A stretch of 64,000 nt of DNA from Cyanophora paradoxa CCMP329. Lineage: Eukaryota > Plantae > Glaucophyta. The notes below the pieces were generated by a model. That model was not told the DNA's origin. It worked only from the letters and a program-made list of their open reading frames with translations, and did not search any database. Positions 62,390 through 64,000 of the stretch are shown in pieces; the stretch's first letter is position 1, and every line of letters starts with the position of its first letter. The stretch lies in NCBI GenBank assembly GCA_004431415.1, contig QPMI01000008.1:1-64000 (forward strand), given 5' to 3'. The position numbers and the translations under genes are program-made.

Positions 62390-64000
62390 TCACTGGACGC
62401 TGCAGGACTTCTCTTCCCCCGCGGCCGGCGTCGGCGGCGGGAGGGGCGCTGGCAGCGACGCGAAGGGCTGCCGAGGCGCCATCAGCTCGAGATGCAGGGC
62501 AAGGGGGAGGGCAGCGCCCTCTGACCTTCGTGTTGGCGACGGCGGCGTCGATGTGGCTGCAGAGGCGCGCGATGCACTCCTCCTGCATGCTGTTGTGGAA
62601 GAAGAGGGCGTTGTGGCGCGGGAAGTTCGCCATGTCGGGCGGCAGGCCGGCCGTCGACGGGAAGCGCTCCTGCGGGTCGTCCACCACCGGGATGATCGCC
62701 TGCGTGGATTGCGGCCGGCATAAATACACGATATGGATCTCTCAGGTCTGCGCGCGCGGTTCACGGGCGCCGCGAGTTCAACTCTGATAGTTTTAGCCAT
62801 GCAGCGCTGGCTCCGCAGACCTTGCCGAGGTGGCACGCCTCCGCGATCTCGCGGCGCACCCTGCGCGCGGCCAGCGGTCAGAGGAGTGGAAAGAGCGACT
62901 CGGCCCCAGCCACAGCCCGTGCACGCACCAGTCCTCGAGCTCCTTGCAGCGCTCGAGGGTGCCATCAACGAGGATGAAGACTGCGGGGCGGGCTAAGGGA
63001 GAGCTATCCACGATCAACGCAGAGCCGGACCGTCGCAGCAGGAGGCGCGGAGGGATTCGAGGATCTTCGAGTCGAAGACGCCGCCCTGCAGCGACCGCAC
63101 GTCGAAGAAGACCTTGTAGCTGTCGGAGAAAGTCCAGGCGTGAGCCTCGGAGAGAAGTGGGGCGAGTTCGAAGGCGGACCCGTGGCTCTCGAGGGCCTTG
63201 CAGAAGAGAGAGGCGAGGTAGTTCTTGCCCCCCATCCGCCGGTACGTGATGCTGCGCCCTGTTAGCGAGCTCATCTAACAGCTTACGTCAGGTGGATGCG
63301 CACAAGACGTGGTACTCGTAGCCGGGAGGGAGGGGCGGGACGCGCGAAGCGGGGCCGTAGCCGGGCGCTGCACCGTAACCCGGCGTGGGGCTGTAGCCAG
63401 GAGCTTGGCCGTACCCAGGCCCGGGGCCGTAGGCTGGGGGCGGGGTGGCGGAGATGTGGCCGCCGCGGAGGGCGGCGATCTCGGCGAGGAGGCGGTGGCG
63501 GGCGCCAAAGTGCGGGACGCCCATCCGCTCGAGCTCGCCGTCGCCCAGGGCGAGGAGGGCGACGCCGTTCGTGTAGCGGAAGGCCCCCGCGAACCTGCTC
63601 CCGCCTCAGGTTTCCGGAGGGGTTCGGGGTTTCTCCTCAGGCAGTGCTGAGCGGGGCGGCGCGGCGCACTCGGCGATCTGGCCGCGGGAGCGGACCCACG
63701 CGACGACGTCCTCCTCGCTCCAGGAGCGCACGTCGCCAGCCGGGGGGGCCGCGGGGGCGCCGGCCGGGCGCCTGCTGGGGCGCGCTGCGGGGCGGGCTCG
63801 CGTCGGGGGAAGGGAAGCACGGGCGGGGGTACACGGACTGGGAGCTGGAGCGGCCGAGGCGGCGGGCGGGGCGGGGCGCGGGGCGGGGGCGGCCTGCGGT
63901 GGCTGGGTGAGGGGCGCGGCCGCGGGGGCGGGGCGGCGGGGCGCACCACGGGGGCGGGGGCGTGGGCGGGGAGGGAGCGGAGGTAGGGCACGACGGCGGC
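62390..64000 (-). CDS. SAM-TIR (SARM1-like NADase) protein with C-terminal CaaX; 5' end outside the window
   Basis: Spliced TIR: HVFITYRRMGGKNYLASLFCKALESHGYKVFFDVRSLQGGVFDSKILESL..DVFILVDGTLERCKELEDWVRREIAEACHLGKAIIPVVD..FP..LPPDM..HNAL..QEECIARL. SAM lies upstream; the protein ends EEKSCSVQ*. Confidence 0.85.

Follow-up and report, generated by a model that had tools for sequence, protein, structure and literature searches.

SARM1-type SAM-TIR proteins with leucine-rich repeats in the glaucophyte Cyanophora paradoxa, and a copy with a reduced LRR region

SARM1, dSarm and C. elegans TIR-1 are NADases with the architecture ARM-SAM-SAM-TIR. In SARM1 the tandem SAM domains form an octamer, the ARM domain keeps the TIR domain inactive, and the released TIR domains assemble into a two-stranded enzyme (PMC11874154). 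Residues H685 and Y687 serve both NAD+ binding and this two-stranded assembly; SARM1 mutated at E642, H685 or Y687 no longer causes cell death, alanine at H685 or Y687 being sufficient (PMC11874154). SARM1 homologs have been reported in choanoflagellates (PMC6040629), and SARM1-like sequences of 'clade 8' in amoebae, green algae and dinoflagellates (PMC13142454). The origin of SARM1 is currently attributed to transfer from bacteria, and there is so far no evidence for TIR-based programmed cell death in microeukaryotes (PMC13142454). Among algae, the LRR-ROCO proteins of brown algae are candidate immune receptors (PMC11378527).

The window studied here, that is, the whole stretch of 64,000 nucleotides that was analysed, ends in a SAM-TIR gene of Cyanophora paradoxa, published as g24064. 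It belongs to a family whose LRR-SAM-TIR architecture is real and apparently undescribed. In literature searches neither Cyanophora TIR proteins nor this architecture was found described, the genome paper mentions no TIR or leucine-rich genes (PMC6704402), and Cyanophora is not named in the accessible part of the supplement text of PMC13142454. The initial annotation of the window had proposed an undescribed system; this holds for the architecture, but SARM1-like TIRs of algae and protists had already been reported (PMC13142454). We read g24064 as an expressed, recently duplicated member of this family which may serve as a sensor-poor executor or amplifier (probability about 0.5), the executor role being read from domain loss only.

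Gene model of g24064 and its truncated duplicate

Domain, PDB, fold and tree analyses were run on published EukProt proteins, referred to by id. With two TIR exons of the window as query, identical Cyanophora paradoxa proteins were found in EukProt. One of them, P0011 (model tig00000056_g24064, 378 aa), matches the minus-strand gene at 62390-64000 exon by exon from residue 40 onward (Table 1). This agrees with the initial annotation, in which the GT-AG exons of the minus strand were spliced into a SAM domain, PGYG repeats, a TIR domain and a CSVQ end. The reading frame of the SAM, TIR and CaaX parts is maintained through seven canonical introns; the flanks are about 70% GC and have short GT-AG introns. 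Scanned exon by exon, the gene gave weak SAM and LRR matches in Pfam, the split TIR being missed, and SARM1 at E ~0.3 only in the PDB. A 60-nt in-frame segment (63120-63179) was rejected as coding because it is missing in all paralogs. The published model has two introns in the linker, both of them doubtful. In a DNA run, extra G/C bases were found at the duplicate's sites matching these introns, and homopolymer errors could explain both. The genome is a PacBio assembly, probably haploid (PMC6704402), and the homopolymer indels at the SAM-TIR copies fit this origin.

Table 1. Coordinates of the SAM-TIR gene, its duplicate and the adjoining element in the window
Feature	Position	Strand	Remarks
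LINE-like element	130..7343	-	Multi-copy; adjoins and truncates the duplicate; left end approximate
Duplicate of linker, SAM and first PGYG repeats	7344..7937	-	Cut at 7343
Vestigial LRR region of the duplicate	7957..8123	-	Two repeats; C-cap out of frame with linker
Terminal exon, second diverged copy	62104..62175	-	Same phase, own AG acceptor; ends CSVQ-stop
Terminal exon	62390..62467	-	Ends CSVQ-stop (CaaX-type, 62390-62404; TGA stop)
TIR exon: IIPV, LPPDM, EE loop	62526..62699	-	N331 and M333 in EE loop
TIR exon with catalytic Glu286	62821..62860	-	Codon 62848-62850; equivalent of SARM1 E642
TIR exon: strand C to DW	62929..62980	-	
TIR exon: VFFDV and BB loop	63031..63119	-	D594, G601, F603 equivalents
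TIR exon: ITYRR	63180..63251	-	SARM1 Y568, R569, R570 equivalents
Exon: SAM remainder, PGYG repeats, TIR start	63304..63594	-	SAM to ~63468; PGYG ~63434-63351
GT-AG intron within SAM, 75 nt	63595..63669	-	Removed in RNA-like runs
SAM domain, first part	63670..63734	-	P0011 residues ~93-113; Pfam SAM_1 on P0011 96-157
LRR C-cap end (AAVVPYLRSL) and Pro/Ala-rich linker	63735..64000	-	Gene continues past 64000

The terminal exon is present in two copies, and both candidate last exons of g24064 end in CSVQ. The second copy and the spacer are overlapped by an inverted repeat of 44 bp (62153-62262), and the stop region recurs in additional short repeats within 62034-62262; an alternative last exon or an RNA hairpin is possible. 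Other features of the window are as follows. Between two SAM-TIR gene copies sits an AT-rich polinton-like virus of 27.6 kb (32127-59783) with 1.05-kb terminal inverted repeats (98.6%), encoding PolB, an rve integrase, an A32 packaging ATPase, a D5 primase-helicase, a patatin lipase and a peptidase S74 fibre-like protein. An intron-containing plus-strand gene at 60264-61438 resembles by eye an FKBP of the thylakoid lumen with plastid targeting (transit peptide, twin-arginine motif) and had no Pfam match in first-exon scans; its last 83 bp recur at 61603-61679. There is also a 1.7-kb direct gene duplication (12068-13725 and 15556-17232, 88%) and a 3.75-kb inverted repeat (18493-22242 and 22501-26253, 98%).

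The protein P0001 (g9984) represents a second locus, nearly identical to g24064. The near-identity proposed for the duplicate at 7344 is borne out (97.4% over 7344-7937), all differences being single-base indels in G/C runs with zero substitutions; a TIR is absent from it in the window, and its LRRs amount to two repeats. The LINE-like element cutting it gives weak endonuclease and RT matches in Pfam (E 0.03 and 0.09) in the expected order, is transcribed in the RNA-like runs, and has high DNA and RNA depth over 7100-7335. The missing 3' half of the duplicate probably lies beyond the element, because P0002 (g9991), a 3' half that begins inside the PGYG repeats, starts where the element cuts.

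In the initial annotation, LRRs were placed upstream of the SAM-TIR linker. This is true of paralogs, but in the case of g24064 a damaged stub of two repeats is found, and its LRR link beyond 64000 rests on gene prediction, not on a transcript. The first repeat of the duplicate's stub has a 3-residue insertion, and the family N-cap, looked for upstream in the duplicate, is absent. A DNA run corrects the frameshift at 8046, which is an error of the assembly; the 3-residue insertion and the C-cap lesion are absent among the read corrections listed. The published models bridge the C-cap frame break by a 70-nt intron (7941-8010), which was not seen in reads over the duplicate (7100-9400). DNA contig depth, which does not equal copy number, is 215 over the SAM and 159-183 over 8046-8911, and this similarity suggests that the stub is common to both copies. 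These data bear on the possibility that g24064 itself is a complete LRR-sensor/SAM-oligomer/NADase receptor whose working LRR domain lies beyond 64000. The g24064 and g9984 models do begin with LRR joined in frame to the linker, the paralog P0021 likewise has a short first LRR module, and some lesions could be artefacts given the many homopolymer errors in the assembly here. However, both models open with one and the same stub of two repeats and leave out the C-cap, the two lesions are not among the corrections listed, and no N-cap is present upstream in the duplicate. The RNA-like runs have no depth over 8255-8640 and no more than a trace over 8101-8254 and over the first repeat. We consider a complete receptor rather unlikely.

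Reads were assembled against the duplicate only (7100-9400), and the label RNA-like of the runs is the tool's guess, although an RNA origin agrees with the intron joint and with the lack of any depth over 8255-8640. The share of sampled words found was 0.32-0.44 in six RNA-like runs versus 0.85-0.89 in DNA runs. Exon-only words make up 0.49 of the stretch, which is the expectation for spliced mRNA before assembly errors, and the share in the RNA-like runs fits spliced mRNA. The joint of the SAM intron (7537-7611 in the identical duplicate) was present in runs X15, X17 and X18 and absent from the DNA run X1. In a 504-nt RNA-like contig the SAM intron is spliced and the sequence continues for 222 nt past 7344 on non-LINE sequence, as expected for a transcript of an intact copy; none of the contigs listed bridges the 7343/7344 junction. 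Joining of LRR to SAM was seen for neither g24064 nor the duplicate in RNA-like contigs over 7100-9400, because the first repeat is almost uncovered and contigs over 7958-8070 derive largely from paralogs. For the closest paralog, g2281, such joining is supported: a 712-nt contig of run X18 has LRR C-cap, linker and SAM joined in a g2281-like paralog, with 546 nt unmatched where g2281 predicts ~528 (isoform t1) or 543 (t2), though this contig contains no intron and is alone indistinguishable from DNA. Low-depth RNA-like contigs also occur at 8682-9085, upstream of the duplicate's LRR stub and unjoined to it.

Low contig depth in the RNA-like runs would also suit a decaying duplicate, transcribed and on the way to becoming a pseudogene as a by-product of birth-and-death evolution in the family. 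The LRR region is damaged, the sister copy is split by the LINE-like element with its matching 3' half annotated as g9991, and the neighbourhood is rich in transposons and viruses. Yet SAM, TIR and CaaX remain in frame over seven canonical introns, the core catalytic residues are kept, splicing is seen, and the end branch of g24064 in the tree is short (0.045). A very recent lesion would leave the gene looking just as intact; all in all we regard decay as improbable.

The SARM1-type TIR domain, its relatives and the single SAM

P0011 scores above the Pfam cut-offs for SAM_1, TIR_2 and TIR. The profile check proposed in the initial annotation thus returned SAM and TIR, and LRR_4 fell short (18.7 bits against a 27-bit cut-off). 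In a sequence search of the PDB, the TIR matched only SARM1/TIR-1 (E 2e-20, 34% identity). Structure prediction, which had likewise been proposed, placed the TIR nearest SARM1: for the AlphaFold model (pLDDT 89), SARM1 was ranked first both by Foldseek and by VIA-align, the latter giving Z 21.2 and rmsd 1.5 A over 136 residues, versus Z 15.4 for the best non-SARM1 TIR. The motifs FITYRR, VFFDV, DWVRREI, IIPV and LPPDM, noticed earlier as SARM1-like, are all found and line up with human SARM1 in the PDB alignment. The putative catalytic glutamate is kept as well, the GAG codon of residue 286 standing opposite E642. Altogether, 11 core positions are kept in P0011, namely the equivalents of F565, Y568, R569, R570, D594, G601, F603, D637, W638, E642 and N679. 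Eight of the nine Cyanophora TIRs keep the glutamate; the second TIR of P0005 has Gln at the catalytic position and is likely a pseudo-enzyme partner.

The EE loop is different. P0011 has N331 for SARM1 H685 and M333 for Y687; none of the Cyanophora TIRs retains H685, and in P0011 and P0012 Y687 is replaced too. Differences at these sites are likewise seen in roughly half of the bacterial relatives. NAD+ catalysis by the g24064 TIR is plausible, but a SARM1-like strength is not assured because H685 and Y687 are replaced, though many bacterial relatives vary there. With the same reservation, the altered loop would count against an executor role.

Outside Cyanophora, no TIR relative above ~50% identity was found, genome and metagenome scans giving at most 47%. 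Nearest to the Cyanophora TIRs come SARM1-like TIRs of bacteria and ARM-SAM-TIR proteins of protists, the latter standing in for animal SARM1 in the tree. The Cyanophora TIRs form one clade (100/100), which falls with the ARM-SAM-TIR proteins in an 85/87 group also holding some bacteria; a joint clade of Cyanophora and ARM-SAM-TIR proteins is neither supported nor rejected (AU p 0.335, in this tree without animal SARM1). One of the stand-ins, P0025 (Picozoa sp. COSAG02), can be aligned with human SARM1 across ARM, SAM and TIR (E 3e-56), and P0011 aligns with P0025 over SAM and TIR (31%, E 1e-29). P0025 comes from a single-cell assembly and may be a contaminant. P0025 and the metagenomic P0046-P0048 keep W683, H685 and Y687. 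Full-length ARM-SAM-TIR homologs of SARM1 with one SAM and every EE-loop residue conserved occur outside opisthokonts in P0025, L081:311-3010 and L082:3001-5472.

In g24064 there is one SAM, not two, and the paralogs also have one per SAM-TIR module. The SAM of g24064 is too diverged to show resemblance to a particular SARM1 SAM; that of P0013 matches the first SAM of SARM1 (E 7e-10, second only to liprin-beta), and this likeness favours the possibility that SAM-TIR was inherited as one unit. A single SAM need not polymerise.

The CaaX-type end read from the last exon is confirmed. CSVQ has the Cys fourth from the end, an aliphatic a2 and a farnesyltransferase-type X; Gln at this position fits farnesylation. 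The same end is common to P0011, P0001, P0012 and P0005. P0013 and P0021, which lack CSVQ, start with MGxxxS, a myristoylation-type motif. Judging from these motifs, membrane anchoring looks like a family theme of the Cyanophora SAM-TIR proteins.

The LRR-SAM-TIR family and the role of g24064

The family is specific to Cyanophora and has about 8 LRR-SAM-TIR loci, with the models g24064, g9984, g23853, g1884, g2281, g2283, g13214, g13217 and g4738. To these are added the variants SAM-TIR-TIR (g10559), ZZ-SAM-TIR (g6653) and TIR-WW-WW (g7153); P0006, P0008 and P0009 were rejected as false matches driven by repeats. The closest full-length paralog of g24064 is g2281 (SAM ~93%, TIR 86% identical). 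P0003, P0012, P0013 and P0014 exceed the Pfam cut-offs for LRR, SAM and TIR. The earlier proposal that LRRs take the place of ARM therefore agrees with the family architecture, whereas the LRR of g24064 is vestigial. In these predicted proteins, short, variable arrays of LRRs occupy the place that the ARM repeats have in SARM1. The LRR module of P0013 is modelled as a capped solenoid (pLDDT 83-97), the full-length model being confident for the LRRs only. In P0021, two LRR modules follow one another; this protein may consist of two fused gene models.

Repeat number changes among the paralogs. Over 17 LRR units of 23 residues, positions 18, 20 and 21 reach 2.5-3.0 bits, and the first 14 positions 0-1.6 bits. 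The variation is concentrated at exposed strand positions of the concave face, entropy not being a test of selection. Such a pattern would be expected of diversified binding surfaces. Variable concave faces also occur in non-immune LRR proteins. This leads to another view of the family, in which the TIR works in non-immune signalling (including stress, membrane or cytoskeletal events) as a scaffold or as an enzyme that is weak or makes a signal, and LRR, ZZ and WW are ordinary protein-binding modules. It would be consistent with the changed EE loop and with the fusion of the same TIR to ZZ and WW domains. Moreover, the chemistry of a TIR cannot be read from its phylogenetic neighbours (PMC13142454), 3'cADPR is the product of an algal TIR (10.64898/2026.04.20.719644), and SARM1 senses metabolites, not microbes. 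On the other hand, immune receptor families such as the LRR-ROCOs typically show lineage-specific expansion, a changing number of repeats and variation on the concave face (PMC11378527), and the glutamate is kept in nearly all of the TIRs. We consider non-immune use unlikely.

Our preferred reading of g24064 as a sensor-poor executor would work as follows. In full-length paralogs, the LRRs would bind foreign or damage-related ligands at the membrane, to which the proteins could be held by CaaX prenylation in one subfamily and by MGxxxS myristoylation motifs in others. By analogy with SARM1, ligand binding or release would let single SAMs cluster the TIRs, and the clustered TIRs may cleave NAD+, giving a signal or a metabolic shutdown. 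Having apparently lost most LRRs while SAM, TIR and CaaX stayed intact, g24064 could be an executor or amplifier that co-assembles with g2281. SARM1 without its ARM is constitutively toxic; therefore an expressed, nearly sensorless copy must be restrained otherwise, for which the altered EE loop or the single SAM could serve. The changed loop would stop g24064 from firing alone.

A wider reading of the family is possible but doubtful. Cyanophora may have undescribed, NB-less, membrane-anchored innate immune receptors in which rapidly varying LRRs replaced the ARM of an ancient eukaryotic SARM1, SAM polymerisation takes the place of the NLR ATPase ring, and LRR-poor members act as helpers. If true, this and the ARM-SAM-TIR protein of Picozoa would place SARM1 in early Archaeplastida and suggest that it first served in pathogen defence. 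The full ARM-SAM-TIR protein of Picozoa widens the range of SARM1. The interest lies more in the LRR-SAM-TIR family than in the g24064 copy. With glaucophyte SAM-TIR proteins that carry variable LRRs, one can test directly whether the module acts in a unicellular alga as a switch triggered by pathogens, and whether a single SAM suffices for TIR assembly. The full-length paralogs g2281, g13214 and g4738 are better experimental subjects than the worn g24064.

Comparison with known systems

SARM1, dSarm and TIR-1 share with the Cyanophora proteins the TIR sequence and fold, the catalytic Glu, and a SAM placed directly before the TIR, the SAM of P0013 resembling SAM1. They differ in several respects. 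First, g24064 and its paralogs have LRRs instead of ARM and so lack the NMN/NAD+ allosteric switch. Second, one SAM is present instead of tandem SAMs. Third, H685 and Y687 are not kept in g24064. Fourth, SARM1 has an N-terminal mitochondrial signal and g24064 a C-terminal CaaX. Finally, SARM1 is one gene, in contrast to the multi-gene Cyanophora family. Orthology by architecture is rejected on the absence of ARM, the single SAM and the replacement of H685 and Y687; in its predicted architecture g24064 is a form of the SARM1-type SAM-TIR kind, not a SARM1 ortholog. The protist SARM1 homologs likewise combine a single SAM with a SARM1-type TIR, but P0025 has ARM repeats that align with those of SARM1 where the Cyanophora proteins have LRRs, and the latter sit on a long stem branch.

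Bacterial SARM1-like TIR_2 proteins belong to the same TIR clade (30-47% identity) and have the invariant Glu, and clusters of Bacteroidota combine LRR with TIR_2. Unlike the Cyanophora genes, they have neither introns nor CaaX, and SAM is absent among the families listed for Atlas clusters or protein matches. A PADLOC comparison with bacterial systems gave weak matches only.

Plant TIR-NLRs and animal TLRs also unite an LRR sensor and a TIR output in one chain. In contrast, g24064 has no NB-ARC and no transmembrane segment, the SAM being the presumed oligomeriser, and the Cyanophora TIR is of SARM1 type (14% identity to RUN1). Membership in the TIR-NLRs or TLRs is rejected, since NB-ARC and the transmembrane helix are absent and the TIR is not of plant or TLR type.

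The brown-algal LRR-ROCO proteins are, like the Cyanophora proteins, an expanded algal family with variable LRR arrays (PMC11378527). Their output is a ROC-COR GTPase and each LRR has its own exon, whereas in Cyanophora the output is SAM-TIR and a single exon holds both LRRs seen in the window.
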